From positions 1,722,351 through 1,786,350 of the forward strand of contig OZ287697.1 in NCBI GenBank assembly GCA_965649825.1: a stretch of 64,000 bases of DNA. The letters run 5' to 3'. Each line of letters opens with the position of its first letter. Position 1 is the first letter of the stretch. The translations under genes and the position numbers were made by a program. The stretch is from Penicillus capitatus (lineage: Eukaryota; Plantae; Chlorophyta). Below are positions 41,201 to 64,000 of the stretch, piece after piece. The notes under the pieces were generated by a model. It had not been told where the DNA came from. It was given only the letters and a program-made list of their open reading frames with translations, and searched no databases.

Positions 41201-43266
41201 AATAGTGGGAGATGGGGAGGTGAATCTACTAAATCATGCATTGATGGAGCATCTTTATTGGTTTGTTTCGTAGGGGGTCTTCATGTTTATGACAGCCGAA
41301 AGTGCTTAAAAGACGTATACAAATGCATTGCTGTAGTTATCATTGACACTCAGTTCGAGGGAAACAGTGCCTATGAGGCTGGAGGAGCGATCTTTGCAGA
41401 CCGCTTGGAAAACATCAGATTTCAGTGCAACTCGTCATCCAAGAATGGCAATCTGAAATTCTTGGAAGAAAAAGAATGGAGTTCTTTGAACCGTATTACA
41501 CCCGACACGACTCTCTGTCCTGCGTGGAAAAACAATTCTGCTGGCATCTACGGGGAGGTTGTTGGTACAATGGCCACCATGGCGAAGATGACTGTCGAGT
41601 ACAAGGGAGAGAAAACAGAAGTCTTGACTGGAGAAGGATTCGAAGTTCGAGACTATGTCGGTGGCAACCAGCTGCCAACGCTGTCAGTGGAAATGCTGGA
41701 TGAACTGAAACAGGGTCCGGCGAACGCCAACACGATCGGTCCGGATGGTATGGCTACATTGACAGCATCAGAAGGGTTTCAAGTTGGCAGTTCTTCTCTG
41801 TCTGTGGAAGGACAGACTGCCAACTTTCCTCTTCTGATCGGTTTTGGATTGCCGGGCATCTACAACATGACAATTAGATTCGCGAGGCACGAATGTGCTG
41901 GAGATCATAACAACAGCGCATTTGTCGATCCATTAACCATCACCGTCCATGTGCGAAACTGCACTGTTGGTGAAATGCCCGTCGGTGAGACGAAGATCTG
42001 CAGCAACTGCAGCACCTCTACGTACAACTTCGACCCTGAAGCAGAAGAATGTCAGCCCTGCCCTGAGAACGGGAACTGCAAGACAAGAGTGATCGTTCCG
42101 AATGATGGATACTGGCACGCGTCTCCCTGTTCCGTCAACATTACGAGGTGCCTGACCTCGTATGCATGCAAATTCGACGATCGCGATGAGAGATTGACAA
42201 ACCTGACAAGAGACATGAAGAACTGCAGAATCAACGCTACCACAGTTGAGGAGTATCAGCAAACTCAGTGTGCTGAGGCGAGTGATTGGTCAGCCTTTTG
42301 ATCTTCTGAGTCTTTGTGTTCTGGGATTCAGGGCCACACGGGTCCTCTCTGTGGAGCATGCAACACCTCGTATGGATCCTCCGTGTCTTCCAGATGCGAA
42401 GAATGCCCCACGGCATTCGGCAATGTCATGACGATTTGCTCTGCGACAGTGATCCTACTTATTCTGTCCGGTGTTACGATCAGAGGGACACTGAGTACCG
42501 CTAGCAGCAGACTGGCGATGCTTTCCGGCCATCGAAGAGTTCCCCGCAGTATTCAGCTCAGAGATCTTTCGCTTCCAGCCGAGCCAGAAACGTCTGAGAT
42601 ACAGGCGTCCCAGGAGGAGTCGCCTGCGATCCAAGACACGAACGAATGTCAAGAAAGCCTGACTGTCACCGAAGTGACCCTGGGACAGTGGAGAGCGGTC
42701 GAGATGTTTAAAGTATGAAGCTATGTGGCATTCGTGAGACTGACAGTCTTCGTTGCAGATAATGTTGAACTACGTTCAGATGACAGTGCTGATCGCATCA
42801 CTGGATGTCGGATGGGCAGTTCCTATACTTGTCATGGCAGAGATATCAGGTCCGCATCTGCGAAAGCTGACAGAATGTTTCCACCCTTCATCGTTGTGTG
42901 CTGCACAGAGTTCTTTGGAGGATTCGCGGTGGACAGTACCCGACGTTCTGTTGTTTGTTTGGGCGGACACGACCAGTCACTGCATCCAACCGCATGGGCC
43001 TTTGTCGTGAGTGTCTGTCTTGTTCCTGCATGTGTGGCGTTGGTGTTCATCGTGTTCTGGATCACAGTTGCACCATTTCATCAGATCCGTCGTCCGGTCC
43101 GCTACGTCATGCAGAGATCTCTGCTGTCTCTGATGGCTCTTTGGCATATTACTTCTGTTCCGGTGATCAAGACGACTCTGAGCACAGTCCTTTGCGTCGA
43201 CGCCTACAATGTTCTGCATGCGACGCCGGAGAAGGATGATGAGACGACCATAGATGGGACGAAAGG
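38275..43266. repeat. Recent segmental duplication, copy at 59006..64000
   Basis: Offsets are 20731 and 20734 bp. ORF translations are identical outside 40832..41765, and looser similarity extends left to about 37460/58194. Confidence 0.92.
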
Positions 43267-44005
43267 AGAGATGGTCAGCTACTGGGCAGTTGACACAAGT
43301 CTGAAGTGCTTCGAAGAGGATCACCGGAGGCTGGTGGTTCTGATCATCTCGTTCGTCTCCCTCGTCTACGGTGGACTCCTGATCGCCTTCGTCGCCATCC
43401 TTGGATTCTCAGAAGACCGGCTGAACGACACGGACAGCTGGATCTACCAGTCTGTGGGATTCCTCTACCGCAGCTACGGACACGGGAGGCGTCGCTACTG
43501 GGAGCTTGCAATTGTGGCAAGGAAAGCAGGGATTGCTTTCCTGGTGTTCTGCAGCCATCGCTTCGACAGCGTGCTGCCCATCTTCGGAGCTGCCGTCTTC
43601 CTGACGCTTGCCGTGAGTGTACAGATTGTGGCGATGCCCTACAGGCAGAGTTTCGACGACCTGAACAAGATCGACACATTCTCTCTTTTCGTGTCGCTTC
43701 TGACGACACTTCTTGCAGCCATGATGAAGAGTGAGAGTCCTACCATTGATGCTGGTCGCTCAGCTATCTCATTTCTGTTTGTTTTCCTCAACATCACGGC
43801 TCTCGCCGTTCTGCTCTCGTTTCTTTTTCGTTACTCCGTTGCCTACGTTAGACTCTCCCTGAGAGAAAGCGGAACGAGAGTGGATTCTGATGCCACTGCG
43901 CTGCATGTGCTGGGGATCTGGTTGTCTTGTATGACTCGGAATCTGGCTGTTCTTCTTGGGTTTTCCAAGCACGATGACAAGTCGAGCATCTGTTCCGGCA
44001 TGTGA
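38682..44005 (+). CDS. Pmp-like beta-helix / Cys-rich / multi-TM protein (unit 2 copy), multi-exon
   Basis: Start MRAKAESVCSALLIMSTTFGLVVGC. Introns 38815-38872, 38948-39003 and 39061-39123 restore the frame into the N-cap. Main exonic ORFs are 39467..42301, 42314..42718 and 42725..44005. Confidence 0.87.
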
Positions 44006-45827
44006 TCTTTCTTTTTTGTCCGTTCCACATACATCATTCTTTTGTTTTCAAGCTGAGTGGAAAGCGGAGCCTTTCTAACTCATGACGAACTTTACACCCC
44101 TGCAGCCCTTCGTACCTTCATATCTAATCCTAGTGTGTGAGGGCTGTAGCGAAGATATGGCCGAGTGTCACTCTTCGAGATATGACGATTGTTGTTTAAT
44201 TGACTTGACGAAAAGATGACGCACGTACGCCGATCGCGTCGGCATCGAATGAACAGAGCTCTGAGGTTACACAGGCGAAGAGTGTGCATGGTGCGACCAA
44301 GAATTTGTCCAACACACGGTGCTGACAATCCGAAGTATTCGACGAAACGACTTCCATGGCCGAGACCACAGACAGACGATTGATTCTTCAGATGACGCTT
44401 GCATTGAAGCCGACGGCCGCTCAAGGACCCTCGAACAGAACGGACACGTCAGCTGCAATCGCGATTCTATGTTCTCCACCACAGCCAACCGCGCAATGAA
44501 AAACTCATCTTTCTCCGCTCGTGGCGGCGGGAAATGCTGTTTAGAGAGCGATCGGCGAGAAAACCTCAAATGGAGAAGACGTCTGGGCTGGTTTCGTTCT
44601 CACGCACATTCTAAAAGCAGGCGATAACAATCCAGCGCGGCGAAAGAACGTGCCATCGGTTTTTCATGGGGGATGAAGGCGATACGAGAGTCGATGCATG
44701 ATCGTTCGCACAAACCTTCAGAACCTGTCGATGTCGCCGTCTTCTGCGCGTTATCACGTGAAGGTCGAAGCGCTGGGTACCGAATGTCCTTAACGCCTAC
44801 AGGAGACGAGCCCTTGGGAAGACTTTCGACCAAGGCGTGCCCTATAGCAGCGAAGGTCAACTATTCTGGACGTGAGGAAATCGACACCGTGTGGAGCATG
44901 GGAATGCAAGAAACATGAAAAACCAGCTAACAACACCAAATCGAGTAACTTACCGCATTCGGCGACCAAACTCAAGCTGCCGAAGTGAAACGCAAACCCA
45001 AACAGTCGTGTGTTTTCAAGACGCTCCAAAGAAGGTTGTCGCTTTTCAAGAAGCAAAGATCACTCTTTCTTCCAGATTTGAGAATAGGTCGTTGACGGGG
45101 GACACGCAGAGGTGACGGGTGTCGATGTGACAAAAGGGCTCGCTGAGTTTTTGGAACGAGTGCTGCAACGAATGGTGCGGAGACGGTTGATCCAGAGCCT
45201 CTAGTGCCTGGAGCCTAGAGGACTAAAGGCTAAAGTAGTGTCAAGCCGAGGATCCAGTGATTTGATTGATGTGTCCAAGAAGACAATGAAATGACCTGTT
45301 GATACAAAAGATCCTAGACTATGTGGATAATGCCCTTTTAACAAAACACTGCAACCTCGTTTTTAAGACAATTCATCGCGATGGGATCACAGTAGACTGG
45401 GCAAAACTTGTGTCGGAGCCACTCGAGTCCTCCGATTACCAGAAGATGGTAGAGAAGTGCTGCTTAAGGTTTTAGAATACTTCCTTTTTCCCTCCCAAAG
45501 GCGACCATAGAAACGCCGCCCACCAACTGTGGATCAGACCTATTCTCATGTCCTGAGTGCGTGTCAGATGTCGATCTTGATCTGTAACAGCGCAAAAAAC
45601 GACAGCGGGGCCAACCAAGAAGGTCGTTAGCAAAAGCGACGACGCGGTAGTCATCCGTCGGTCTGTGCGGTTAGTTCTTCGCCGTCGAGGAACGTTTAAC
45701 CGCTTGTTGGATTGTGAGTTTGGTTATCGGCTGTTCTGCGCTCAATTGTTGACTTTTCTGTGCACTGACTTGCTATGAACTTTGGTTGCAGTACTAGCGA
45801 GGCCCTTTGCGGGGGTCCTCGATCTAT

Positions 45828-46017: not shown

Positions 46018-46246
46018 TGTCAGTAGAAGTTGGCTCTTACTTCGTGACTGCGTCGTTATTTAGGGGTTCCATCTTCCAAGAGGCACTCATGAGTGGTTCA
46101 TGTCATCTCAGGGTTCCTTTTCTATGGCTCTGGGAAGTGGGTGACTCATCTGCCTAGACAAGTCATGTCACGTGCACCGTATGAATACGTGAAATATGAA
46201 CCTGTAGATACCTTTGCCCTGTAAACGTGAAAGCATTCCTCTGACA
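46018..46246 (+). mobile_element. Solo LTR (229 bp) related to the satellite-element LTRs
   Basis: Termini are TGTCAG...CTGACA, with flanks TCATG/ACATG (4/5 TSD match). It shares TTTTxTATGG..CTGGG...GA.TCA.CTGCCTAGACA with the 55656..55921 LTR. Confidence 0.65.
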
Positions 46247-46296: not shown

Positions 46297-46519
46297 TGTC
46301 AGAAGGAGTGAAGCCGTCCCAACGTGACTGCCTCGTTGTCTAAGGGTTCTGTCTCCGAAGGAAGGCCTACACGAGGTTTACGTTAGCCCATGGATCCTTT
46401 CCCGTGGTCCCGATAGGCCGGTGACTCATCGGTCATGTCGCCTGTGGCATACAAATATGCGAACGTAGACCATTTTTACCTTGCTCTGTAAAACAATTCC
46501 TCTGACATGGTTTCGGAGC
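46297..46519 (+). mobile_element. 5' LTR plus PBS of a truncated LTR element
   Basis: TGTCAG...TTCCTCTGACA (46297..46507) is similar to 46018..46246 and is immediately followed by TGGTTTCGGAGC (46508..46519). No partner LTR was recognised. Confidence 0.7.
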
Positions 46520-47365: not shown

Positions 47366-47598
47366 TGTTGTGAGAATTCGCTCGGAAAGTTAAGCAGTGC
47401 TCGTTCGCGGTTTGCTATTCGTATGCAGAAACGTATAGAACACAGTTACAAATCTGTGATCGTGTGCGTCCGTTTGTCAGTGAACAGCTGTCCACCTTCG
47501 TGCAGCTAGCTGCCACGGGACGCGTTGATGTGACATTTGACGCGTATAAATCCGAACGATTAATTGTTACAACAATCTTTATAACCAGTGTGTGTGGG
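47366..47598. mobile_element. LTR-like fragment flanking the Gypsy element
   Basis: It starts with TGT exactly where homology to 27495 ends. It shares AGTTACAAATCT and CACGGGACG with the solo LTR at 54063/55992. Confidence 0.5.
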
Positions 47599-47777
47599 TG
47601 TCAGACTAAATGAGCACAATGAAGGCATCCCGACGGCATAAGAGAAGTCGCATCAGAACCTACTACATGTCACATCAAAACCCTAGCACTATAAAAGGGG
47701 GACAATTGCGTTGTTTACGTCATTCTGTTTTAAAAGTCTTCCGCTAATGCGTGTGTTTGTTCACCTACGACGCGACA
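47599..47777 (+). repeat. 5' LTR of the Gypsy element
   Basis: TGTCAGAC...GCGACA, with TATAAAA at 47690. I counted 7 substitutions versus the 3' LTR (about 96% identity). Confidence 0.95.
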
Positions 47778-47789
47778 TGGTTTCGGAGC
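47778..47789 (+). promoter_or_regulatory. Primer-binding site TGGTTTCGGAGC (initiator-Met-tRNA-like)
   Basis: It abuts the 5' LTR and differs at two positions from the plant tRNA-iMet PBS TGGTATCAGAGC. Confidence 0.85.
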
Positions 47790-47800
47790 ATCGATCCAAG

Positions 47801-48154
47801 ATGCGACGTTGTTTCTATGTTCTGGCAGCCCTACTTCTATTCGGGCTCGGTGGAGTTGGAGGTCAGGCGGAGGCTAAATCCACCCTGGACCGGAAGTTGA
47901 AGATGGACGACGAGATCAACTTTCAAGATCTCCTGGAGGCGATTAAAAACAATCAAGACGCAACGGAGAACTTACAAGAGGTTGTTGACAATATTGTGGA
48001 GATCGTATCCGTTCTGGCGGCAGACGCTGCGGCCGCTAAGGCGGCAAAGGAGGAAGCCCAGGGTTTCGATGTCGAGCTGGAATTCACATCGGAAACGTGG
48101 CATTGCGTCAAGGAATGTCTCCGTCTTTTTTTCGAGGATGCTATGAGCTCATAG
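47801..48154 (+). CDS. Retroelement ORF1: signal-peptide-like N-terminus plus acidic coiled-coil-like segment
   Basis: MRRCFYVLAALLLFGLGGVGGQA-EAKS. It overlaps ORF2, which lies in the -1 frame, across T TTT TTC (48127..48133). Confidence 0.7.
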   Translation: MRRCFYVLAALLLFGLGGVGGQAEAKSTLDRKLKMDDEINFQDLLEAIKNNQDATENLQEVVDNIVEIVSVLAADAAAAKAAKEEAQGFDVELEFTSETWHCVKECLRLFFEDAMSS

Positions 48155-49488
48155 TCGGCATCGTGGGTCGATTGGGCATAGCGTGGAATCAAGGAGACTT
48201 TGTTACAAAGTCTCCGTTGACCTTCATGATATACAACACGGTATGCACCATACCGGGTGCCGTTCGAAATGCTGTGTGGTTCGTGGTCCAAGTATGGACT
48301 GCGTACAACGCCCTACGTAGCTGGTTGAGGGGAAGCCCTAAACTTGAGAAGGGCGAAAAGATGAACGACTCGATTGAAAGTTACGAGGAACTGACGCAAG
48401 TCCGTCGGTATCGAGAAGAAAGACTCCAAGACTTCGTCGACAGACTTGTCACGAAGTGGAAGACCCTCACACCCAAGATCTCAGACGCAAGATTCCTGAG
48501 AGTGTTGAAACAACATTTTCCCCGAGAATTCCTGCAAGGCCTGCACGATCTCAATCTTGACGAAGTGAAGGTGAATACAGTGATCGAAAAGTGGAACAAT
48601 TTCTGCAAGTGGACAGCCCCTCCGGCGAACAGAGCAGCTCCCCGGGCAACGCAGCCCACGGCAGCGAGAGTGCAACCAGTCAGAAGGGATGCGAGACAAA
48701 ACCCGCAGCAGGGACAGCAGCAGGGACAGCAGCAGGGACGACAAGACGAGAGGAGGTGCTACAGATGCAATCAGCCAGGGCACTTGTTTGCCCAGTGCCC
48801 TTTGAATGCCCCGGGTCGCTATAACCGAAGGGCAGTTCAGGAAGTTAATGTACCAGAAGGCTACGAGTTGACACCTGCCCCATACAACGCCCAGTGGGAG
48901 CAAGAGGGACGATGCGATCGAGAGCCACCGTCGCCGTGTGCACAGTGCGGCGAGCGCCATTGGACTAGCCATTGTCCGAGTCGTCAGCCAAGTTCGAGCT
49001 CCCATGCAGAAGCAGAGGCACCGAGACAGGTCTTTCACGACGAAGGGTCGGACACCGAAGAGAGCACTCGTCGCACCGAGAGCGTGAGCGTTTTCTCGAT
49101 TGCAAAGACAGGGACTCCCTTTATTGCGAAGAAGATCCACATCACGTTCCAGTTCACGAACAGGGACAAGAAGGTTCAGCCGGTGAAGGCGTTGGTTGAC
49201 ACCGGTAGCTGCGCAAATGTCGTCTCATTCTCGGCGCTTCAGAAGTTGGGATACGCTAAGACCGACCTCATACATGACGCAAAAGTACCTTCAGCATTAG
49301 CCGGGTTCGCAGGCGAGGACGCCAGAACACTTGGAGGCATCTTCCTCAAGGTGCGCCTGGGAAGCGTCACCCGCGATATACCGTTCATCGTGATGAACGA
49401 CGTCCTGACGCACTGCATCATTGGTATGCCGGCGATTGACGCATTTGACCTCCACATCCGTGGACGGGCACGTGCAGTGTCTTTTTAG
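48097..49488 (+). CDS. gag: Retroelement ORF2: hydrophobic segment, Gag (two zinc knuckles) and aspartic protease
   Basis: Motifs are YEELTQVRRYREERLQDFVDRL (gag-like), CYRCNQPGHLFAQC, CAQCGERHWTSHC and ALVDTGS...IIGMPAI (protease). Confidence 0.9.
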   Translation: MALRQGMSPSFFRGCYELIVGIVGRLGIAWNQGDFVTKSPLTFMIYNTVCTIPGAVRNAVWFVVQVWTAYNALRSWLRGSPKLEKGEKMNDSIESYEELTQVRRYREERLQDFVDRLVTKWKTLTPKISDARFLRVLKQHFPREFLQGLHDLNLDEVKVNTVIEKWNNFCKWTAPPANRAAPRATQPTAARVQPVRRDARQNPQQGQQQGQQQGRQDERRCYRCNQPGHLFAQCPLNAPGRYNRRAVQEVNVPEGYELTPAPYNAQWEQEGRCDREPPSPCAQCGERHWTSHCPSRQPSSSSHAEAEAPRQVFHDEGSDTEESTRRTESVSVFSIAKTGTPFIAKKIHITFQFTNRDKKVQPVKALVDTGSCANVVSFSALQKLGYAKTDLIHDAKVPSALAGFAGEDARTLGGIFLKVRLGSVTRDIPFIVMNDVLTHCIIGMPAIDAFDLHIRGRARAVSF

Positions 49489-52330
49489 AACATCCTGCCG
49501 AGGAGGGCGACTCTGCAGGATTCCGCGTGGTACAGTTGTGGGAGACGGAGAAGGGAATCCGCCCTTTTTGTAGACAGAATCTCATCAAGTTCCCGTTAGG
49601 CAAGACCAAGTTTGTCCCACCGCGTGAGTGGGTCAGTTACAATTTTCCTTGGGCCGTTCGTGGGGATCTGTCGTCTGTGTCTTTTCATTGCTCTCTGAAC
49701 AGATGTCCTTTTCTTGCGTTTGTGACCGTCTCTGACTCGGGACAGTTTCGTCTGAACATCTACAACACATCGAACGAGGCTCAAGTTCTGCTAGGGAGCA
49801 CCTTTGCATGCAACTTTTGGTATTCCGGTCGGATGCGGTGCAAGTTTTTACCCCTCTGGAATAAAGGGGATGGCGAGGATCGAGCAGTCAAGGCCGTGTT
49901 TTCAGTCAGTGGTGATATGTTTTCCGAGTTCCCCGAAGTTTTTGATGATGGGACCTACTGCGTGACGCCTGCGATGAAGGCTTTGCGCGTTGACATCCGA
50001 GAGTGCCGTCTGAAAGGTGATCCGACGTTCATGGGCGAGCGTACCTGTCCGAAGATCGACCACCTAGTCCCCGAGCAGCGCATTCGAGAGGAGATAGATT
50101 CCTTTTTGCGAAAAGGCTTCATCGAGCGTGTGAAGTCGAGTGACGAGGGTTTCCTCACGCCTATCTTCTTCTTGCCGAAGAAGGATGGAAAGAAGATAAG
50201 GACACTCAATAACTACCGCAAGCTTAACGCGATGTGTGACTTTTCGTCGGCGACATTCGTCGACGCCATGAGGACGATGCGGTCCATACCGAGGATCTGG
50301 AAACACTTCAGCAAGCTGGATCTGGCGAACGCTTTTTTCAGTGTGGGGTTGAGCCGCGAAACGTCGAAACTCTTCGGGTTCAACATCTTCAACGAGACGT
50401 ACGTGTGGAGGGTGATCCCCCAAGGTTTCGGGTGGAGCCCTATTTGGTTCGTCGAACGAGTGAAGGACATTCTGCACAAGCTCCCCGTCGTTGTATACGC
50501 TGACGACGTGCTCGTTGGAGCCGATTCGGAGGCTGAGCACAACCGAATTCTACGGTTGGTGCTGCAGAGGTTCGAGAGGTTCGGTCTGCGTTTGAACAAG
50601 GACAAAGTTATCATCAATGTTCCCGAAGTTGACTTTCTCGGCTTCCGCGTCAAAGGAGGCGGTTTCAACCTGAAGTGTTACATGGAAGAGAAAGCGACCA
50701 AGACACCGAAGCTTGAACACTACAAGCAACTAGAGAAGACGATCGGTGCCCTCAACTTTTGCCGGGCGCATGTCCCGAATCTGAGCAAGAAGATGGATAT
50801 GCTTCACTCGGCCAAACAGAGAGCCCTGAGGTGTCCAGCCGACTGCGATGAAGCATGGTGGAAGGCGATCAACGAAAAGGTCAGAGAGATATGGGTAGAC
50901 GTAGTGCGAAGCGGCGTCGAACTCAGTCTCGGCGGGTCATTCGACTCGTTTGAGCTCTATGTCGACTGGAGCGGCCCGCATCGCGGATACGTCCTATTCG
51001 GCAAGTGCGATGCCGCGAGGGAAAAGCGCATCGTTGCCGTGGGATCTGCGAAGGACCCGATCCCCCACCAGAGTTCCTTTCTAGGCGAGATTCGGGCAGT
51101 GAAGTGGGCTCTTCAACAGACGACACAGTTTCGAGGAGCCATCAAGACGAAGACATACGTCGACAACAAGGTGGTGGTCGATGGCCTGAACAAGGGGATT
51201 GCGGCGTTCTGCGATGACCGAAGGTGTGCTCGAGTGTTTGCCTTTATATGTGAGAACGAAGGAAACGTGATGTTCTCCTATTTACCTGGAAACCTGAACC
51301 AGATAGCCGACCAGCTTTCCCGATTAGACTCGGGTGGACTTACGCAACAGCCCTTAGACAAGGCGATCATGGCGATTGACCGCCCCGCGGAACAGGAGAT
51401 CGAACGCAGGATACGTTCCGCCCATTTCGGACACTGGGGATACCTGACGACGCTCCAGAACCTGCTCCTCGAGTCGGAGAGGTGGCCAAACATGGAGCGG
51501 GACGTACGCAACTTCGTGTCGAGCTGTCCGAACTGCGCCTTCAACGGCGAAGAGCAAAGGAGGGATGTCCCGAGCACCGAAATATCTCGCAGAATCGGCG
51601 AGAGAGTGTCCATGGATCACTGTGGGCCATTTTTCGACGGATCGCATATCCTCGTAATCGTGGACGACGCGACAAAATGGGTAGAGGCTCTGAGAACCCC
51701 AGGAACTGGAGCCGTGCACGCCATGAGAGCGTTGGATCAATGGCAAGCAAAGCACGGAAGGATCGAGCTGCTTTGCACGGATAATGCAAGCGCTTGGAAC
51801 TCAGACACCTTCCGAAGATGGGCAGCAAGCCGACGCATCGACACTAGGAGAAGTCCGAGTTATCACCACCAGGCCAACGGATTGGCAGAGCGCACCATCA
51901 AGACGCTGTGCGAGCGAATCAGGCGCTTCATGAATGGGTCGACGAGGGCGTGGCCCAAAGCGATACAAGGAGCCGTAGACGCCATCAACACATCGTGGAG
52001 TTCAGTGACTAAGACCACGCCGCAGTCTCTCATGCTAGGCATTGATCGCAACGGCGCATTGCTGGATGACGAAACAAGCCGAAAAGCTTGGGAAGATGCG
52101 TGGAGAAGCGCTCAGCTCGCCAAGACGTACAAGCACGAGCGATTCAAGTGGAAACACCCGCGGCTGTCGAAGCCACTGCGTGTAGGCAATCGGGTGCTGA
52201 TGAAGAATTACCACCGGTCGAATCACCCGCTCGGAAAGCTGGGCCCGAAGTGGATCGGTCCCTTTATGATCGAAGAGCAGAGATCGGAATCGACCTGGAT
52301 CGTGCGAGAGGGACGAGGCTTACCGCCTGT
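49449..52330 (+). CDS. pol: Retroelement pol (RT, RNase H, integrase), interrupted at 52330; last 13 codons at 55998..56037
   Basis: RT motifs NNYRKLN, KLDLANAF, PQGFGWSP and YADD; RNase H-like LYVDWSG...GEIRAV; integrase HFGHWG...CPNC, MDHCG, TDNASAW, NGLAERTI; GPY/F motif KWIGPF. The frame is open from 49449, -1 relative to ORF2. Confidence 0.95.
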
Positions 52331-54057
52331 TGTCGCGCGGAGGCGCCGAACGAAACGATAACAAACAGCGGAAGTCTTACAGTGTTCGAAGCAAGGTCTA
52401 CAAAGACTCAGATTGTCCATTAAATACTTGCGCGATGACGCGACTTGACAAGGCAGGTGAATCACCCTAGCCTCAGAACCAGAGAAAATGGCCTTGGGTG
52501 ATTCAACCAAGACCCCCCAGGATATGGCCTCCTCAAAAACGAGGCAGTGTCATATCGCTCGGCGACACCACGCTTCCCGCCAAACTCCGAAAAACTGCAA
52601 GCAAGCCCCCACGAAAACAACAGAAGGAAATCAGTCTATGCCCGAGGTGAATCGTCGCAGCGCCGAGAAAATGGTCCATCCCGAAGATGATGATGCTTCT
52701 GTGTTTGGTTCCCCCTCTCTCTGCTGCGCATCCGATATCGTCGGATCCACTGACTCGACCGCATTAATCCGCGCTTGCGGACAGTCCTTGGCCAGATGCC
52801 CCTTGCATCGGCACACATAACATATCCGACCGCGCTTGATGGCACCTCCGTCATCATCTGCCGCGTCGGTTGCTCTCGCCCGTCGTCGGCGCGGGAACCG
52901 CCCAATGTCGTGCAAAACGCGCTTCATCTGATGCAACGTCTTCACGGTTCTCCGTCCTTCTGCCGGTCTTGTCGTCATCAACTCAGCCGTCCTTTCGCCG
53001 TTCGTCCGTACGGTTTCCTGCAGAGTCTTCACCTCGGCGGCCAAAGACTGTAGACATGGCACCAAATCAGGTGCCGAAATAAACTTTTTCTTCGCCTCTG
53101 TGAAGGCGGCATCAGTCTCTCTAAGCTTCTCATGGAGAGAGGAGGCTTCCACGCGTGCCTCGTTTGCATTTCTCTGTGCCTCAACGATACCTCGTTCTGC
53201 CTCGGAAAGCTCTTGTTGAAGCTTTTGTTTCTGCTCCTGCAGATTCTCATTTCCGACCATCAAACACTCCATCTCGTCGCTGGCTTCACTAGCTTCCCAT
53301 TCGGCCTCACTGGCTCGTCGTTGTGCACATTGCAGCTCCCGTTTCAATCGTTCATTCTCCTTGTGCAAACGTCCCGTCGTCACTTGCAAATCCCGTCTTT
53401 CTTGTAGTCGCGGACAAACGTATCTGATGAAGTCGACCAGTTCGCCCGCGTCAAACAAAAAACTCTCAGGGCGCTGGCCGCCCACCACGTTAACCCGACC
53501 CCACGTCCACACCTTATGACAACGAAGCGCACCAGGGTACAGACCCTCCTCCTCCTCCAATTCTCTGAGCAAACTCGGTCCGTAGACAGTGTTGCCATAA
53601 TACCCGGTGAAACCTTCCCCTCCTTGACCTTGCTCTGCTCTTCTTTCTCGTCGCCCTCGACTCATCCTTGCTCCTGACTCTTGAAATTCCTAGGTATGTC
53701 TAGAAAATGTCTAGACAGGACTCGACTTCCCCGAAGTAAGCGCTTTAGTGCACACAGCACGCGCGCAACGTCACTGAGACGGAGTTCAAACTGAGGAGCG
53801 TTATCTCAGCTCCGAAACCACGTCGCGCGGAGGCGCCGAACGAAACGATAACAAACAGCGGAAGTCTTACAGTGTTCGAAGCAAGGTCTACAAAGACTCA
53901 GATTGTCCATTAAATACTTGCGCGATGACGCGACTTGACAAGGCAGGTGAATCACCCTAGCCTCAGAACCAGAGAAAATGGCCTTGGGTGATTCAACCAA
54001 GACCCCCCAGGATATGGCCTCCTCAAAAACGAGGCAGTGTCACATCGCTCGGCGACA
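52331..54057 (-). mobile_element. Non-autonomous LTR element A (1727 bp), antisense inside pol
   Basis: The 237-bp LTRs 52331..52567 and 53821..54057 show 2 differences. The PBS is at 53820..53809 and a PPT-like GGCGGGAAGCGTGG precedes the 3' LTR. The TSD CCTGT is at 52326-30 and 54058-62. Confidence 0.92.
52631..53665 (-). CDS. Element A single ORF: unknown N-domain, coiled coil, CCHC zinc knuckle
   Basis: A 344-aa intact ORF with a heptad-rich ERLKRELQ...EARVEASSL segment, CYVCRCKGHLAKDC and a C-terminal FTSGID. Confidence 0.85.
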   Translation of the reverse strand: MSRGRRERRAEQGQGGEGFTGYYGNTVYGPSLLRELEEEEGLYPGALRCHKVWTWGRVNVVGGQRPESFLFDAGELVDFIRYVCPRLQERRDLQVTTGRLHKENERLKRELQCAQRRASEAEWEASEASDEMECLMVGNENLQEQKQKLQQELSEAERGIVEAQRNANEARVEASSLHEKLRETDAAFTEAKKKFISAPDLVPCLQSLAAEVKTLQETVRTNGERTAELMTTRPAEGRRTVKTLHQMKRVLHDIGRFPRRRRARATDAADDDGGAIKRGRICYVCRCKGHLAKDCPQARINAVESVDPTISDAQQREGEPNTEASSSSGWTIFSALRRFTSGID

Positions 54058-54176
54058 CCTGTTGTTAAACGTTGCTTCAGAAGACGCAGTAAAGTTCTTA
54101 AAGAAAGTTCGTGCGCAGAAGTTACAAATCTAATCGAATCTCTTTTTACTTATACGCATGATGTGATGTTACCACC

Positions 54177-55921
54177 TGTCGGCAAGATGGCGTTTTGCTG
54201 ATGTGACTGTCTTGTTTTCGATGGGTCCACATTCAGGGGGGGGCTTGGTTGAATCACCTAAGGCCATTTTCTTTGGTTCTGAGGCTAGGGTGATTCACCT
54301 GCCTAGGAACGTCGCGTCACCGCGCACATACATAAGGACACATTCTGAACACTCAGGACCTTGCTCCAAACAGTTTGTAAGTCTTCCGCTGTGTTAATCT
54401 TTCGTCCGGCCCGATCGCCGACAGTGGTTTCGGAGCGTGTATACGTTCCTCAGTTGGGGCTCCGTCTTTGTGACGTTGCGTGGCTGCTCTGTGCATTGCG
54501 CTCTCCTACGTGGAGAACGAGTCCTGTCTAGGCGACTAGACGCACCAAGGAAAGCCCCAGGGACGGCAGTTGAGGGATGAGTCAAGCACGAATAGAATGG
54601 ACAAGGGAGCGAGGTCGAGAGGAGTGTTATATCTACGAGACATACAAGAACGTCGCGAGCATGCTCGCGCATATGGGTCAAGACGATGGCCTCAGCCCTA
54701 GCCTTGCGGGAACACCGGTGCTGGCAGGCTCGGTGCTGGCGGGCATCTGCAATGAGCAGCCTCATTTGCAGTACGTGGTGGCGGACGGGGACATAGCTGA
54801 TTTCCTTAGTTATGTTTGTCCGCGACTGCAAGAAAGACGAGACCTGCTAGGGACGACGGGACGGTTGCGCGAGGAACGAGAGCGGCTGCGCCAGCGGGTG
54901 GCGACCGTCGAGGCCGAAAAGGAACAGCTGCAACAGCAGCTGCGGCGTGAACAGCGAAGGATATCCGAGGCAACGGCAGAAAACGATCGGCTGTCAGGCG
55001 ACAACACGAAGCTGCGACATGACATTTCCAAGGCAGAACGAGGCATCGTCGAGGCACGACGAGACGCAAACGAGGCACGCGTAGCAGCCTCCTCTCTACA
55101 GAAGAAGCTCGAAGAGACAGAGACCGCCTTCGGAGAGGCAAAGAAACTTTGGTGTCTAGTCTTCGGTCGTTGTCCACAGAGGTGAAGGCACTGCATGAGG
55201 AAGTCCGGACAAGTGGCGAAAAGACAATCGAAGCGGTGGTGAGGAGACCACCAGAGGAACGACGGAATGGGAAGACTCTACGCCAGATGAGGAGAGTGCT
55301 GCATGACATCGGACGGTATCCGCGGCGACATCGAAGAGGGAGGGCAGCCGGCGCAGCTGACGATGGCGGGGAAGCCACGAAGCGCGGCCGAGTCTGCTAC
55401 AGCTGCCGGTGCAAGGGGCACCTGGCGAAGAACTGTCCGCGGGCGCGGACAGACACGGTTGCGTCAGCGGAGCCGACGGGATCGGATACGCAGCCGAGAT
55501 CCGACATGGCGACAGAGTTGAATACAGCATCAGCGTACTCAGGGCTCAAGATCTTGTCCTTTTTCCGGCGGAATTTCACCTCGGGCATCGACTGAACATT
55601 AGTAATTGTGTTTGGGGGGCCTTGCATCTGTTTTCGGAGTTGGCGGGAAGCGTGGTGTCGGCAAGATTGAGGTGCTGATGTGACTGTCTTGTGTGGGAGG
55701 GGGCCACCTTGCTCTGGGACACTCGGGGTCGTGTCATTTGAGGTTTTGGGCCGAGAAGAGGCCTTTTTTATGGTCCTGGGGCAGTACTGAGTCACCTGCC
55801 TAGACATGTCGCATCACAACGAGGGTATTTAATGGGACAATCCGAACCATGTTTACCTTGCTCCAAACAGTTTGTAAAGTCTTCCGCTGTGTTAATCTTT
55901 CGTCCGGCCCGATCGCCGACA
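54177..55921 (+). mobile_element. Non-autonomous LTR element B (1745 bp), same family as A
   Basis: LTRs are 54177..54423 and 55656..55921 (TGTCGGCAAG...CGCCGACA), the PBS is at 54425..54436, and the TSD CCACC is at 54172-76 and 55922-26. Confidence 0.9.
54577..55595 (+). pseudogene. Element B ORF, homolog of the element A ORF, broken by a frameshifting deletion near 55147
   Basis: ORFs 54577..55185 and 55149..55595 together align to the A protein (YVCPRLQERRDL, CYSCRCKGHLAKNC, FTSGID). About 19 nt present in A are missing. Confidence 0.8.
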
Positions 55922-55997
55922 CCACCGTGCTGAGCACGGGACGATGTTCAGTAATAATCTTCATTACTTGCCTTCATCATCCCATCTCGACACCTGT

Positions 55998-56037
55998 TCT
56001 GGTTCATTCCTCCCAAATAAAGCCCTATCTAACATAA
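55998..56037 (+). CDS. pol: Displaced 3' end of the host integrase
   Basis: Removing 52331..55997 joins CCT GT to T CTG GTT CAT... in frame and restores ...REGRGLPPVLVHSSQIKPYLT-stop. Confidence 0.88.
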
Positions 56038-56142
56038 AATCACCTGGCTGGAACGCTTTTATACTTTCCCTCAAGTCGTGCACATCGTCTCCATGTGGCC
56101 TCCTATCTCTTCGGAGTTTGCGCTCGGAAGGTGATGAGCCCA

Positions 56143-56321
56143 TGTCAGACTAAATGAGCACAATGAAGGTATCCCGACGGCATAAGGGAAGTCACATCAG
56201 AACCTACTACATGTCACATCAAAACCCTAGCACTATAAAAGGGTGACAATTGCGTTGTTTACGTCATTCCGTTTTAAAAATCTTCCGCTAATGCGTGTGT
56301 TTGTTCACCAACGACGCGACA
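56143..56321 (+). repeat. 3' LTR of the Gypsy element
   Basis: A 179-bp near-copy of 47599..47777. Confidence 0.95.
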
Positions 56322-56410
56322 GACCAGATGATCTTATCTGTTTTTAAGGGTCTGCCTCCGCATACGTTCGACCGATTCTCCTCCGCCGACGTGAGTGTTC
56401 GAGTGCGACA
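56322..56410. mobile_element. LTR-like terminal fragment
   Basis: It ends in GCGACA exactly where homology to 35921 begins. Confidence 0.45.
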
Positions 56411-57006
56411 GTGTGGCAAAACGGATATTGGTTGTTTCTGTGGGACGTTGTCGTCCGTATTACATGTCTCTTGACGGACGGCCTAGAAATGGCGTGTAAG
56501 GAAAGAGGCAGGTTGTGTCTATCATCCCTAAAGAGTGACTTGGCGATGAGCACAATAGCACAAATCTCACTCTTTGAAGGCAATGGTACGTGATGATCAT
56601 CAATCGTCAACCAGACAACAGACACGACCGTCAAGCGCTAACAATTCAGTAGACTCACTATTTGACAAACAGACATGATCGTTGATAGAGGCCAAGAGAG
56701 GGACTGTGTCGCGATGGACTTGCTTGCTTTGTTCTTACGGTTAATCTATTCCATTGCTTCGAAGGCTCTCACACATGGACATTTGCTGAATAGTATTCAT
56801 TCTTCGCTATTCGCCTGTTGCGTCGATCTGATTTTAAGATCTCTGAGACGAGGGATTATCCCTTCACCTAAAAGGCCAAGAACTCCGAAGTCGTGTCCGT
56901 AGCGAAATTCGGTTCCTGAAGCTGCGCCAGCAGAATAAGCTAGCTACGTTCGAGAACCGTCGAGTTTATCTTCTTCCGACAAATTGAAGTAATTGCATCC
57001 GTCAGG

Positions 57007-58284
57007 TTAGTCAGCGACGTCGAGGGAAAGGTAATCTGATTGCTTCCGTTTCTCAACAAGAAGCCAGGAAGATTGACTTCGCAGAGGCCATCGAGCTCTG
57101 TCAGCGTGCATGGTCCAGGTTGATGACTCGACGTCCGATCTCAGTGTTACATCAAGTCTCTTCAGTCCTGTCAAGGACAACAGCACACTGCGGAAGCCCT
57201 CGCACGCTTCAGCAGTCCCCAGATGCACACCGAGAGAATGCAGCCGAGAGTACGTTTCTGAATGGAAGAGCTGAAGATCGCCGCCGTCTGTCCCGTCGCC
57301 GAAGTAGTCCAGTCGCTCCAGCCGCGTCATTGAGGTCAGACCGGCGAGCCGCCGGGCAACGTCGAGATCTTCGGACGGAAAACTGGTTGAACAAGAGAGC
57401 TCGACGGCGTTTGGAAAAGCGGTCATTAAGTCAGAGACGTGTTCGGAAGACACCTGTCTAAGCTTGACGGGCAGAGACTTGCAAGTTGCGTCCCTTTGTC
57501 GACACACGCGGCGGTACTCTTGAATGCCATCGTCGAGAAGATAGCCGAGTACTTTATGAAGGTGTGAAGAACTTCCTCCGACACTTTCTCCCTGCACCTC
57601 TCTTTCGACGTCCTTGGCCTGGACGACGCGGATTTCCCCCTCGTCTTGACCGGGGGGCGGAGGAGGAGCATTGTCGCCGGAGTCGTTCCCGTGTTGGCTC
57701 AGCTCACAAGCGCGGCGGAAGTCTTGAAATTGGATGAGGATGGGCGATAGTTCGAAGGCCACACAGACAGCGTTTCAGCAAAGGGCGACTTGTTACAACT
57801 GAGAATAGACAGCGAATGTTTTGCAAGGTATAAACAGAATGTATGCGATTCACCGATGACAAAGGAACTTGATCGTCAAACGAAAGATGTCTTTATGTGT
57901 CGAAGCCTTGCTTAAATACTCAGACCCTGATGTGACGACAGGAAGAGTCGATGAACTTCAAGAGTGAGTTTGCAATAAGATTCTCAATTAGACTAGGGAA
58001 TTCAGTATGAACTTCTAGAAGTTTCCTAGGAACTTCTCAGGAACTCACTCCCAGTCATCACGACTTGTCTGCGACTCAGCCGTGATGGTTACTTTTGCAT
58101 AGCCAAAGACCCGACAAGTGCTAGGTGACAGAAATGTCACTATTATATGGACGTCCCATCACCTCTTCGTCAGAATTGCGCCATTCTTTCACAGAAGGAA
58201 CCAATCCTCGTCCAGCAAGAGGCCAATGCAATTCCAGTGACTGGACTGCGGTCGCCTTTCGCCGGAAACATCACGTTTTGCCAT
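57007..58284 (-). pseudogene. F-box-like/LRR pseudogene (unit 3 copy) split by a solo LTR
   Basis: The N-terminus MAKRDVSG...DEDWFL is at 58284..58194 and continues HKVLGYLLDDGIQEYRR at 57562..57007. Similarity is lost beyond about 57007. Confidence 0.85.
57563..58193. mobile_element. Solo LTR, 631 bp, unrelated to the nest LTRs
   Basis: TGTGAAGA...TCTTTCACA termini, with the 5-bp TSD GAAGG at 57558-62 and 58194-98. The empty site TGAAGGAAC is visible in the paralogs at about 18901 and 37457. Confidence 0.9.
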
Positions 58285-59412
58285 GAGGTGCACCGTCGGC
58301 TTGGTAGATTGACTGAGACGTGGTTGTCGTCGCCAGATTGTCGTCGCGCTGTTCGACGGCGCCTCTTGCGTACGACGGCTCTGTCGGCGTGTGATACGAG
58401 GCGTGGACGTCGCGTGCGCCATGTAATGCGGTCGCGTTACCGCGATTTGCGATGCGAGTACTAACAGCGCTTGATGTGACTCGAGTTTTCTTAGAAATAC
58501 ACATCGAGGGCAGTTTGTGTCACACAGAAGGATGGACGTTGGGTGAATCAGTTCGCCCACGACAGGCTTTGACCCCTACCACTCAAGGCCCGCTCGGGAG
58601 GACAGGTTCGCGACTGGATACGGCGCTTCGCTGTGCATTAGCATGGAGACGCTGCCGTCATCGCATTCCTCCCACTATCGTGCTCCGAAGATGGCGGTAC
58701 TGTTGCCAGAACTGAGACCGATAGTACGTTCTTCCGGTAGAATCGTCTCCAGACAGACTGCAAAAACAGATGACGAGAACAGGTTAGGCGTATGAAATCG
58801 GACAAGGGAAATGCCAGCGAACTCCAATCCTCCAACATCGTCACAGATGCGACCTCAAACTTGGTTGTTCTGAGACAGCAACGGAGGAACTTGTGGATTC
58901 ACGTTGCAAGCACCCGCATGCTGGTTCATAACTGCTCCAGAAACGCGTTCCTGACCCACTCTGTTTCTCCATCAGAGGCTCAGCCCCACCAAACACGCTT
59001 CCAACACAGAAGCGTTGTCGCCGCACGGAAGACAAGGCAGTCCGCCGGGGACGAAACCTCGTGCCGGCGACGGTCGACGACGCGCCCAGTGCGCACTCAC
59101 TCGCCGTCGACGCACGACAGGTCTGTGCTCGAGACTGGGTCGCCTGTTTGCCTCGCCTGTGTAGTCCATTTGCCCGAGTCTCGACTTGTCGACAAAACGA
59201 GACGGTGGATATCATCACAGCACGTTGGATATTATGTGGACAGAGCGGCAGCATGCTGGAACGTGCTTCCACGGAAGGCCGTCATGTGTGGTCGCTGTCG
59301 CGCCAGCGCTGATGACCCCAGTTGCGTCAAGGGGCACCTACACTATAAAGCCCCTGACTTCGATTTGATCAAGCACACAGCACGAGTCAAAACCTTCTAC
59401 ACTGCGAACAAC

Positions 59413-62400
59413 ATGCGAGCGAAGGCTGAATCAGTTTGTTCGGCCCTGTTGATCATGAGTACTACCTTCGGCCTCGTCGTCGGATGTGCGTTGACGGCCT
59501 CGACGTTGACGCACGCAAGGCATGCACCGACATCATCGCTTTCCGGTGACAGCATGGTTTACTGCTTCGTCACTCACCTGGCTGTTGGTTCTTAACTTCG
59601 CAGAACTGGACGACGAGCCTGTTGTGCCCGTTCCTAGTGCCAAGTCTGTATCGTTCAAACCAACCCTACAGCCTCAAGTACGTCTACCTTCTCTGCACAA
59701 GCAACGCGGAGAGGGTCCTATCTCGGCGCCCAGGGAAGAAGCGACGCGCGGACCCTTCGCCAAGTGAGCCAAGATGGCAAGGCGACAGCAGGTTCGTTCC
59801 ATTCGCTGTCACGTCGCGCCTCGTAGCTGACTGTGCTGTCGCGTTTTCGCTAGAGGTCGCCTGTCGTCTGTCGAAGGCGAGGCGTCGCCGTTATCTGAAT
59901 GCCAAGACGAGAGAGTGGTTGCTCAACTCGGCAGTCCTCGACGAGATACAAGACGACCTCCAGCTCATCGTCAACTGTTCTCGACCGGGAGACGTGCTGC
60001 TGCTCGACACCACGAAGACAATCCGGCCTCCTTTACGCACCGTCATCTCATGGCCGCTGACGATCAGCGGCTACGTCCCGGGAGGAGAGCACGACAGGGT
60101 CAACACTGCTGCCTCGGAGAAGCGAACCATCCTCGTCTGTCCGCAGATGAACGAAGGACTGTTCACATTTCGGTAAGCTCAGACTCTATCCGTCCTAATG
60201 ATGTTAGATGTGTTCGCTCGCAGGACCACTGATGTCACTCTGACGGACCTTGTCGTAGAAGGGTGCCTATTCGTCGTTTCTGGCACATCGGAGTCCGTCA
60301 TCGGCTTCGAAAAGTGTGACCCTAAAGCCACCAGGGGACTCACTGGGGGAACCATTCGGCTAGATCGCATCGGATTCAGAGAGAATCGTTTTCTTGGCAG
60401 ATCAGTTGCCATCCAAGCGAACGCGTCATCCTGCTCAAAACTGGAGATCGAAGATTTCTACTTCCAGAAGAACACCTGCAATGGAGTCTGCGGTCTTCTT
60501 CTCGCCAAAGCGAACAGGCTCCAGAACATCACCATCAGACAGAATCGACGAATATCATCGCTCAATGGAGTCAACGATCTGCTTCTGACCGAAGAGAACA
60601 GACTTCAGAAACTTTCCATGGAACATTTCCGATCGATACCATCCTTATCTTCCAGATCGGTGATCATTTGGGCACCTCCTCGGTCCTCGACATCTGCCGA
60701 AAACATCAGTGCTTCGGAGAATAGTTGTGCCACAATCGAGGTCGACGGAGGCTCCTTCGGTCTGTCAAACAGCATCTTCAGGAAAAACGCGGCAACCGAT
60801 GAGGAGGGAGACGACTCCATCAGTGCCTGTATCAAGATGAAAGACGCATCTGCTGTCATCCGTGACTGCAGTTTCGAGGAGAACGAAGCAAGTTACGGTG
60901 TGGCGATCAATGCTCGAAGATCGAACATCACTCTCGAAGATTGTGCATTCCGTGGCAATGTTGCTGGGATGGACGGGACCATCTATCTCCGGAATAGAAG
61001 TTCCTTGACGATCGACTCCTGTCGGTTTTCGCGGAACAGAGCCGAGAAGTCTGGTGGTGCAATCTATGCACAGAATGCCGAACTGAGCGTCACACACTTG
61101 ACCTGTGTGCAGAACAACGCTACACTGAAGGGAGGGTGTCTGCACGTGGCCGGGTTCGGCTCAGTGAAGATGACCGACTCTGTCCTGAAAGGAAACAGAG
61201 CTCGCTCAGGCGGCGCTCTACATCTCAGAAATACATCAGCAGCAATCGACAGCTCGAAGTTTTTATCGAACCGAGCTGAAAAACTGGGAGGAGGAATCCG
61301 TTCGATCGGCTCAAACATCACTGCAAATGGAATCATAGCTGACGGTAACCACGCTGAATATAGAGGTGGCAGTGTTTCGATCGCTTCAAGATCCAATCTC
61401 ACCGTGCACGACTCAGTCTTCAAGAACGGCGCCAGTTCTAGGGGAGGAGCAGTCGAACAGAGTGAGAACTCTGTGGGAAGGTTCGGCAATGTGACCTTCG
61501 TGGACAATTTGGTTGATGAGGAAGGAGGCGCCATCTTTGCGGATAACGCGACAGTGATTATTAATCACTCCAGATTTAGGGATGGAGCTGCTACTTCGCC
61601 TTATGGCTGGAATTATGGTGGTTTTCTATTAGCGAGGAATCACAGCTTAGTTTTCGTGGAACATGCAACGATGACAAATGGAACTGCGCGACATGGCGGG
61701 GCGATCTACTTAAAAAATTCCGTCTGCACGGCAAAGCAGCTAAACGTGTCAAAGTGCACTGCAATATTTGCTGGTGGAGCAGTAGTCGTTGGAAGTTCTG
61801 AATTCCTCTGCACAAACTGTCTTTTTGCTGCGAACACGGCCGAGTCTGGCGGAGGTGCCATTTCGATCGATACATACCGACCCCGCAGATCTTTTGTCCA
61901 ATTACAGGAGAGCAGAATGGTAAACAATAGTGCGAGATGGGGAGGTGAATCTACTAAATCATGCATTGATGGAGCATCTTTATTGGTTTGTTTCGTAGGG
62001 GGTCTTCATTTAGACGAGGTATACCATTATTCACGATTGTTGGATGATGGATACGAATGCACTGCTGCAGCAATCATTGACACTCAATTCGAGGGAAACA
62101 ATGCCACTCAGGCCGGAGGAGCAATCTTTGCAGACTGTTTGGAAGGCATCAGATTTCAGTGCAACTCGTCATCTGAAAATGCCAATCTGACATTCTTTGG
62201 AGAGAAGGACCTGAGTTCTTTGCGTCGTATTACACCTGACAAAACTTTCTGTCCTTCGTGGAAAAACAACTCTGCTGGCATCTACGGGCAGGTTGTTGGT
62301 ACGTTGGCCACATCGTCAAAAATGACTGTCGAGTACAAGGGAGAAAACACAGTTGTCCTACCTGGAGAAGGATTCGAAGTTCGAGACTATGTCGGTGGCA

Positions 62401-64000
62401 ACCAGCTGCCAAGGCTGTCAATGGAATTGCTGGATGAACTGAAACAGGGCCCGGCGACCATCGACTTACTGAATGAGAGAATCTTCGCCGAAGTTTCAAC
62501 ATCAGAAGGGTTTCAAGTTGGCAGTTCTTCTCTGTCTGTGGAAGGACAAACTGCCAACTTTCCTCTTCTGATCGGTTTTGGATTGCCGGGCATCTACAAC
62601 ATGACAATTAGATTCGCGAGGCACGAATGTGCTGGAGATCATAACAACAGCGCATTTGTCGATCCATTAACCATCACCGTCCATGTGCGAAACTGCACTG
62701 TTGGTGAAATGCCCGTCGGTGAGACGAAGATCTGCAGCAACTGCAGCACCTCTACGTACAACTTCGACCCTGAAGCAGAAGAATGTCAGCCCTGCCCTGA
62801 GAACGGGAACTGCAAGACAAGAGTGATCGTTCCGAATGATGGATACTGGCACGCGTCTCCCTGTTCCGTCAACATTACGAGGTGCCTGACCTCGTATGCA
62901 TGCAAATTCGACGATCGCGATGAGAGATTGACAAACCTGACAAGAGACATGAAGAACTGCAGAATCAACGCTACCACAGTTGAGGAGTATCAGCAAACTC
63001 AGTGTGCTGAGGCGAGTGATTGGTCAGCCTTTTGATCTTCTGAGTCTTTGTGTTCTGGGATTCAGGGCCACACGGGTCCTCTCTGTGGAGCATGCAACAC
63101 CTCGTATGGATCCTCCGTGTCTTCCAGATGCGAAGAATGCCCCACGGCATTCGGCAATGTCATGACGATTTGCTCTGCGACAGTGATCCTACTTATTCTG
63201 TCCGGTGTTACGATCAGAGGGACACTGAGTACCGCTAGCAGCAGACTGGCGATGCTTTCCGGCCATCGAAGAGTTCCCCGCAGTATTCAGCTCAGAGATC
63301 TTTCGCTTCCAGCCGAGCCAGAAACGTCTGAGATACAGGCGTCCCAGGAGGAGTCGCCTGCGATCCAAGACACGAACGAATGTCAAGAAAGCCTGACTGT
63401 CACCGAAGTGACCCTGGGACAGTGGAGAGCGGTCGAGATGTTTAAAGTATGAAGCTATGTGGCATTCGTGAGACTGACAGTCTTCGTTGCAGATAATGTT
63501 GAACTACGTTCAGATGACAGTGCTGATCGCATCACTGGATGTCGGATGGGCAGTTCCTATACTTGTCATGGCAGAGATATCAGGTCCGCATCTGCGAAAG
63601 CTGACAGAATGTTTCCACCCTTCATCGTTGTGTGCTGCACAGAGTTCTTTGGAGGATTCGCGGTGGACAGTACCCGACGTTCTGTTGTTTGTTTGGGCGG
63701 ACACGACCAGTCACTGCATCCAACCGCATGGGCCTTTGTCGTGAGTGTCTGTCTTGTTCCTGCATGTGTGGCGTTGGTGTTCATCGTGTTCTGGATCACA
63801 GTTGCACCATTTCATCAGATCCGTCGTCCGGTCCGCTACGTCATGCAGAGATCTCTGCTGTCTCTGATGGCTCTTTGGCATATTACTTCTGTTCCGGTGA
63901 TCAAGACGACTCTGAGCACAGTCCTTTGCGTCGACGCCTACAATGTTCTGCATGCGACGCCGGAGAAGGATGATGAGACGACCATAGATGGGACGAAAGG
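59413..64000 (+). CDS. Pmp-like beta-helix / Cys-rich / multi-TM protein (unit 3 copy), truncated by the window end
   Basis: Same exon structure as 38682..44005 at +20731 bp, with ORFs 59622..60176, 60198..63035 and 63048..63452. Confidence 0.87.

Follow-up and report, generated by a model that had tools for sequence, protein, structure and literature searches.

A probable heterologous double insertion at one CCTGT site in the integrase gene of an LTR retrotransposon of Penicillus capitatus

Described double insertions and the Penicillus nest

Nested clusters of retrotransposons with long terminal repeats (LTRs) are familiar from the intergenic regions of maize and from the piles of Ty elements and solo LTRs upstream of yeast tRNA genes. 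Elements pile up in such clusters, solo LTRs form, and young copies lie inside older ones. The same holds for a nest in the green alga Penicillus capitatus, located within 64,000 nucleotides of contig OZ287697.1 (assembly GCA_965649825.1, positions 1,722,351 to 1,786,350; the whole stretch is termed the window below). An autonomous LTR retrotransposon (the host) is interrupted near the end of its integrase gene by a short gag-only element (A) and, directly beside it, by a putative solo LTR (C), which in turn contains a second gag-only element (B). The maize and yeast clusters differ from this nest in being ordinary nesting without re-use of an identical staggered cut. On balance, we think it probable that ordinary insertions by integrase built up the nest and that one of them took a site used before. 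This would make the nest a heterologous double insertion in which the integrase tail is not a dedicated target.

Double insertions with the target preserved in the junction are on record for P and hobo elements, for non-LTR elements, and for some LTR elements (McGurk & Barbash 2018, PMC5932611). One LTR-element example is an inverted pair of Rover copies whose junction holds ATATAT (PMC5932611). The Penicillus nest has the same duplication–element–duplication–element–duplication layout, which is likewise read as two insertions at one site. It differs from the described cases in combining two families, a gag-only element and a solo LTR unrelated to it, and in showing no evident preferred target motif. 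It is also a single case, as opposed to a population survey.

Ty3, which integrates at Pol III start sites, makes a 5-bp duplication, and its profiling routinely shows independent hits at a single nucleotide position (PMC6673722). The duplication length and the possibility of repeated independent hits at one nucleotide are common to both systems. Unlike Ty3, the families studied here showed no recurrent site or conserved context in 17 other insertions, and there is no tRNA gene in the window. Tf1 and Tf2 can form tandems without integrase, by single-strand annealing, which leaves one shared LTR between the elements and no duplication (PMC11042837). New copies land at existing related elements in this case as well, and a shared-LTR array at one of our comparison loci (L002) fits this route. 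The A–C junction, in contrast, has two full termini and a 5-bp duplication, which is the signature of integrase. For this reason, it falls outside the annealing route.

Architecture of the nest

Below, L001–L018 denote 18 loci fetched for comparison, and P followed by a number denotes a related protein. The interrupted gene and its occupants were arranged as follows.

49527–52361, plus strand: host pol open reading frame (ORF) as interrupted, 944 aa (Pfam RVT_1, Integrase_H2C2, and rve; 81% identical to P0001)
52326–52330, no strand: CCTGT copy 1, left duplication of A
52331–52567, minus strand: 3' LTR of A in its own orientation, 237 bp (two differences from 53821–54057)
52631–53665, minus strand: ORF of A, intact, 344 aa, gag-like, with a coiled coil and a CCHC zinc knuckle (translation, domain search)
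53809–53820, minus strand: primer-binding site (PBS) of A (exact match to TGGTTTCGGAGC on the minus strand)
53821–54057, minus strand: 5' LTR of A in its own orientation, 237 bp (LTR alignment)
54058–54062, no strand: CCTGT copy 2, common to A (right) and C (left)
54063–54176, no strand: left part of C, 114 bp, starting with TGTTAA, its last 5 bp being CCACC (terminus reading)
54177–54423, plus strand: 5' LTR of B, 247 bp, a mosaic with B-type ends and an A-like center (LTR alignment)
54425–54436, plus strand: PBS of B (12-mer match)
54577–55590, plus strand: gag-like coding region of B, with a frameshift near 55150–55185 (three-frame translation against the protein of A)
55656–55921, plus strand: 3' LTR of B, 266 bp (LTR alignment)
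55922–55926, no strand: CCACC second copy, right duplication of B
55927–55992, no strand: right part of C, 66 bp, ending with TCGACA (terminus reading)
55993–55997, no strand: CCTGT copy 3, right duplication of C
55998–56037, plus strand: displaced pol end, LVHSSQIKPYLT and stop (joined-flank translation; colinear with L005)

All three copies of CCTGT directly adjoin a TGT...ACA terminus, and both copies of CCACC (54172–54176 and 55922–55926), which flank the inner element B, abut such a terminus as well. The same duplication therefore marks the junction as well as each outer flank. By chance, pentamers at fixed boundaries would match at about 1/1024 per pair. Joining the outer flanks (52330 to 55998) yielded an in-frame ...GRGLPPVLVHSSQIKPYLT*, that is, the restored tail ...LPPVLVHSSQIKPYLT-stop. 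This tail is conserved in pol relatives, which end in ...PPVLAHSSQIKPYLN, ...PPFLVHSSQIKPYVT, ...LLVHSSQIRPYLEN, and others. The order of pentamers and elements, and the in-frame restoration on excision, had been claimed in an earlier sequence-only reading of this DNA, and both agree with the positions, the termini, and the joined-flank translation. That reading counted 13 lost integrase residues; we found that 12 (LVHSSQIKPYLT) were displaced.

L005 is the empty site for the double insertion. This copy, the only other one of the host family in the comparison, lies on another contig, is 92% identical to the host, and reads through as uninterrupted, colinear ...CACCGCCTGTTCTGGTTC..., where CCTGT occurs once and the junction shows no gap. 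The called protein of L005 (P0169) ends in ...TWIVRE because a GGA codon at L005:8868–8870 has become the nonsense codon TGA, seven codons ahead of the insertion point.

A chimeric join in the contig might mimic such a structure, and the low coverage (13x, as given in the contig name ctg340394_13x; 576,620 bp, long-read metagenome assembly ERZ25074695 of ENA) and the repeat-rich region give this idea some ground. Three elements with complete termini, matching duplications, and a perfectly restorable ORF are unlike the products of collapse or chimerism, and the two LTRs of A can be told apart. We regard an assembly artifact as highly improbable.

Element A (52331–54057, minus strand) is ~1.7 kb long, with an interior of ~1.25 kb. 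Its LTRs differ at exactly two sites in the 237-bp alignment (T at 52331 versus C at 53821, and T at 52553 versus C at 54043), as had been reported, and with the intact ORF, this bears out the claim that A is recent. On the same two grounds, A would be the youngest of the three occupants. The domain search of its interior gave no reverse transcriptase (RT) or integrase (IN) match; A carries a single gag-like ORF without pol. The gag-like protein has 30 homologs, all from ENA assemblies.

Element B (54177–55921, plus strand) is also ~1.7 kb long and lies inside C between the CCACC copies. Its interior is ~70% identical to that of A at the DNA level. The first ~40 and last ~70 bp of its two LTRs are near-identical, and their centers are ~79% alike. 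In the 5' LTR, the center is A-like, and an 18-bp block of the 3' LTR is missing there. This pattern points to gene conversion or recombination between subfamilies, not to age. Since the mosaic would reflect such exchange, B cannot be dated by LTR identity.

C amounts to 114 + 66 = 180 bp, runs from TGTTAA to TCGACA, and is flanked by CCTGT on either side. These termini and flanks support the earlier description of C as a solo LTR; homology to the LTR of a full-length element was not found. Searches of the window and L001–L018 with word sizes of 7–9 returned no relative of C, and C showed no similarity to the LTR of A. Global alignment of C with 11 LTR types gave scores within the shuffle range and no full-length partner element. 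The LTRs of three loci from sister autonomous families (L004, L015, and L016) were examined for a match to C, and none was seen. C is accordingly called a putative solo LTR, from its structure.

Two insertions at an identical pentamer, with a third nested inside, were part of the earlier claim, and the structure fits it. C is unrelated to the LTRs of A and holds an older nested element, and A is nearly undiverged, which indicates separate events. A composite or single-event origin of A and C was considered, and no support for it was found.

We infer the order of events and the cause of the site re-use as follows. An element with C-type LTRs would have entered the ~5.06-kb autonomous host 145 bp upstream of its 3' LTR, duplicating CCTGT, and would later have collapsed to the 180-bp solo LTR. 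Gag-only B would then have entered C, duplicating CCACC. Most recently, gag-only A would have arrived in the opposite orientation through a 5-bp staggered cut on the left CCTGT of C, giving rise to the third CCTGT. The top strand would have been cut before CCTGT and the bottom strand at the C/flank junction, which are the same two bonds as those used when C arrived. As an insertion regenerates its own target on both sides, a locally favored or selectively tolerated position could be hit again. The repeat hit would most likely be a rare occurrence where neutral target space is small, or the mark of a locus-specific hot spot. C must be later than the host, and B later than C. The relative ages are given by the LTRs: those of the host are 96.1% identical, those of B are near-identical outside the conversion tract, and those of A differ at 2 of 237 positions.

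The consequence for the host integrase was considered as well. Host pol is native (RT and integrase) up to 52330, and the last nine codons of the interrupted ORF come from the LTR of A. The last 12 residues of the integrase are thereby replaced by VARRRRTKR. In the AlphaFold model of P0001 (mean predicted local distance difference test score, pLDDT, of 82.7), the residues past the insertion point form strands 885–888 and 892–894 (pLDDT ~88–91), which are the last two of the five strands of the C-terminal domain. An HSxx[IL]Kx[YF] motif is kept even in relatives whose pol is only ~45% identical to that of the host. Because the lost residues comprise two predicted β-strands and a motif conserved in distant relatives, the truncated integrase is probably defective, and this copy dead as an integrase source.

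Target choice and the re-use of the site

Nine further gag-only copies, with LTRs of 123–247 bp and the same PBS, were taken for comparison. Their duplications included ATCTG (L001), AGATG (L003), GGAAG (L012), GAAGG (L013), AACAC (L018), CCGT (L014), and GCCGC (L017); a solo LTR in L017 was flanked by GTTCT. Three sister autonomous families had perfect 5-bp duplications in nine of nine copies (GACGT, ATTCT, GGTCA, GTCAG, AAACG, AACGC, ACCTC, GGTAT, and GCATC). A perfect 5-bp duplication was thus present at 16 of the 17 other insertions of these families, the remaining one being 4 bp long. Since all 17 target sequences differ, the enzymes of these families appear to make 5-bp staggered cuts without pentamer specificity. 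A symmetrized profile of 13 target sites revealed only weak biases: T is seldom the base that opens the duplication, and purines predominate at position –2. The fit of the CCTGT site to this profile is not particularly good.

The sequence-only reading had proposed that non-autonomous elements specifically target the 3' end of the integrase gene of their helper, as a form of retroelement-on-retroelement parasitism. Two insertions at one codon of an autonomous element that shares cis signals with the gag-only elements are what such targeting would produce. The codon was empty in L005 and likewise in the related pol sequences whose tails are complete, at least 14 in number; the latter set comprised P0001–P0005 and ten further cluster members, including P0152, which is present on six contigs. 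The nine other gag-only insertions lie at unrelated sites with unrelated duplications, and C lacks a demonstrated gag-only identity. Nesting in other retroelements is common, and it enters other parts of pol: the L012 copy lies in the RNase H–IN linker of an unrelated pol and the L014 copy inside an RT ORF. L002 and L008 lie in LTR piles, L003 is between cellular genes, and the other gag-only copies landed elsewhere. Neither recurrent occupancy of the pol codon nor a conserved target sequence or context was seen, as would be expected of a targeted retrotransposon. The census of 17 other sites gave the outcome that the earlier reading had itself named as grounds for abandoning the idea: different targets, and a codon that is otherwise empty. 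We consider targeting of the integrase tail scarcely credible. The parasitism part of the claim fares better without it, as the shared cis signals described below make a helper/parasite relation plausible.

The cut of A coincides to the base with the LTR/flank junction of C. This would also be expected if the integrase or intasome were drawn to resident LTR termini, so that new copies land at, or within a few base pairs of, old LTR ends. Resident termini might be bound like cDNA ends, or the DNA structure at the LTR/duplication junction might be favored. The TGTC...GACA termini common to all families are in line with this idea, and two of the comparison loci offer suggestive neighborhoods. In L008, an autonomous copy (L008:2500–2570 and 7894–8160) has its duplication GTCAG within TGTCAGAT, an 8-bp LTR-start-like string directly 5' of the start of a degenerate solo LTR. 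The pile beside this insertion consists of 5' LTR fragments (35, 8, and 63 bp) and an inverted solo LTR. L002 contains a tandem LTR–interior–LTR–interior–LTR–interior–LTR array (L002:2743–7328) with a period of 1451 bp, whose units are 98–99.6% identical and have no duplication between them. An inverted solo LTR begins 3 bp past the last LTR of the array and is followed by a 5'-truncated gag-only element (L002:7329–9097).

The junction scan, which covered 313 kb, speaks against such attraction. It included at least 18 other datable insertions, and the A–C junction was the only one in which two LTR termini are joined through 5 bp. Counts of GACA-N(k)-TGT over the same 313 kb were not raised at k = 5. 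In L003, a similar-looking junction was rejected as a second case, as there is no LTR end with AGATG downstream. L002 and L008 were rejected as clean adjacent insertions; the neighbors lack clean duplications, and deletions or fragments were found at both. Most insertions (L001, L003, L004, L006, L007, L009–L011, L013, and L015–L018) have no LTR terminus nearby. We judge integration directed by LTR edges to be unlikely. It is a shade more doubtful that resident termini attract the integrases of this hitherto undescribed lineage in such a way that piles form and genes are spared without a chromodomain or known tether. If true, a bias toward LTR edges would be a novel route by which LTR elements reach safe havens.

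Recombination is evidently active among these elements, as seen in the A-like tract in the 5' LTR of B, the shared-LTR array of L002, and a host without a duplication of its own. The nest could, in principle, have been assembled by ectopic recombination or gene conversion involving copies with different occupants, or by duplication or transposition of a pre-formed composite. Two occupied copies recombining would still require two independent hits on the same pentamer. No second C and no second A–CCTGT–C unit was present in the window or in the 18 loci, and every base is preserved in the three pentamers and in all termini. A rearrangement therefore seems very unlikely to us.

Several points weigh against ordinary insertion with re-use of the site, which we prefer. 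If insertions fell uniformly across the ~7-kb nest, the probability of an exact hit on either of the two junction pentamers of C would be about 3e-4, which makes pure chance uncomfortable unless many nests were screened. Such a value is not absurd over many scanned windows, or in a compact genome with a small tolerated target space and frequent nesting. The 13-site profile revealed no sequence feature of a hot spot at the CCTGT position. The LTR status of C, and its origin from an integrase of the same type, are read from structure, with no relative known. Lastly, the arrival of A as the final event is deduced from LTR identity, which is open to distortion by gene conversion, as the LTRs of B show.

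The host lineage, its dependants, and their surroundings

The host spans 47599–56321 and measures ~5.06 kb without its inserts. Its remaining features were located as follows.

47599–47777, plus strand: host 5' LTR, 179 bp, TGTCAG...GCGACA (96.1% identical to 56143–56321)
47778–47789, plus strand: host PBS, TGGTTTCGGAGC, directly 3' of the 5' LTR
48097–49488, plus strand: host gag-protease ORF, 463 aa (Pfam zf-CCHC and Asp_protease_2)
56143–56321, plus strand: host 3' LTR, preceded by the TTCGGAGT box and a polypurine tract (PPT)

Direct LTRs with TG...CA ends, the PBS at 47778, and a purine-rich tract ending in GGAAGGTGATGAGCCCA lead us to read the host as an autonomous Ty3/gypsy-like LTR retrotransposon. 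The order of the Pfam matches is protease (in the upstream ORF), RVT_1, Integrase_H2C2, and rve. No RNase H model matched in the window copy; the relative P0003 does carry RVT_3. The host gag-protease is ~50% identical to the C-terminal half of the L004 gag-protease, and its alignment to relatives is confined to the C-terminal half. No target-site duplication of the host copy was found, its flanks being GTGGG (47594–47598) and GACCA (56322–56326). Because of this mismatch, the copy may be a recombinant of two copies or may have lost a flank.

A set of 5.8 billion proteins contains only about ten close relatives of host pol (P0001–P0010), every one of them from ENA, Logan, or EukProt, and the next match falls to 29% identity. 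In a PDB search, the closest solved sequences were foamy-virus RT and PFV integrase, ahead of Ty3. The small number of close relatives, the drop in identity, and these closest solved sequences suggest that the host pol lineage is a deep, undescribed retroelement branch.

The 12-nt PBS TGGTTTCGGAGC is identical in the host, in A and B, and in all related autonomous and gag-only families of the window and L001–L018. Within the window, it is located at 47778–47789, 53809–53820, 54425–54436, and 46508–46519. Autonomous and gag-only families alike have a TTCGGAGT box, a repeat of the PBS core, 25–35 nt upstream of the 3' LTR. TGTC...GACA termini and 5-bp duplications are also common to both kinds. 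No tRNA gene matching the PBS was found in the window or the loci, and the window gave no tRNA or Rfam match. A scan of JGI metagenomes with the gag-like profile returned no relative. The corresponding scan with GACA plus the PBS yielded 119 chance 16-mer matches with no pol or gag homology.

TR-GAG and other non-autonomous LTR elements (PMC8704663, PMC13570524) have LTRs, a PBS, a PPT, and one gag-like ORF, lack pol, and carry the cis signals of an autonomous partner. All of these properties were found in A and B. They differ from those elements in that alignment of their protein with the host gag is limited to the CCHC knuckle (17 residues for the protein of A; BLASTP, E = 0.006). Because of this restricted match, A and B are best regarded as TR-GAG-like dependants, not simple deletion derivatives of the host. 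We infer that host-type enzymes may mobilize A and B in trans. A helper/parasite relation between the host and A and B is plausible, since the two are non-autonomous and share cis signals with the autonomous element that they interrupt.

The neighboring genes in the window include PMP-repeat, RCC1, and DCD-domain genes. A gene cluster of ~7–8 kb is present in three copies (17691–25459, 36254–44309, and 57001–64000) and codes for proteins of 944 aa that carry Chlamydia PMP-type repeats. Identity is 96% between copies 2 and 3 and about 77% for copy 1. The transposon nest sits in the spacer between copies 2 and 3. A 229-bp solo LTR with a near-perfect duplication (TCATG/ACATG) occupies 46018–46246. 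A related 211-bp LTR follows 50 bp further on (46297–46519), bordered on the left by a purine-rich tract and on the right by the common PBS. Such an arrangement is that of a middle LTR in a tandem, or of a truncated element.

The lineage has some descriptive value of its own, with short LTRs of 90–180 bp, a universal PBS echoed as a 3' box, and diverse gag-only dependants. The nest provides a clean, base-exact heterologous double insertion with a verified empty site in this uncharacterized retroelement lineage, and may serve as a useful annotated case. It also cautions that a shared target duplication is no proof of a single event.

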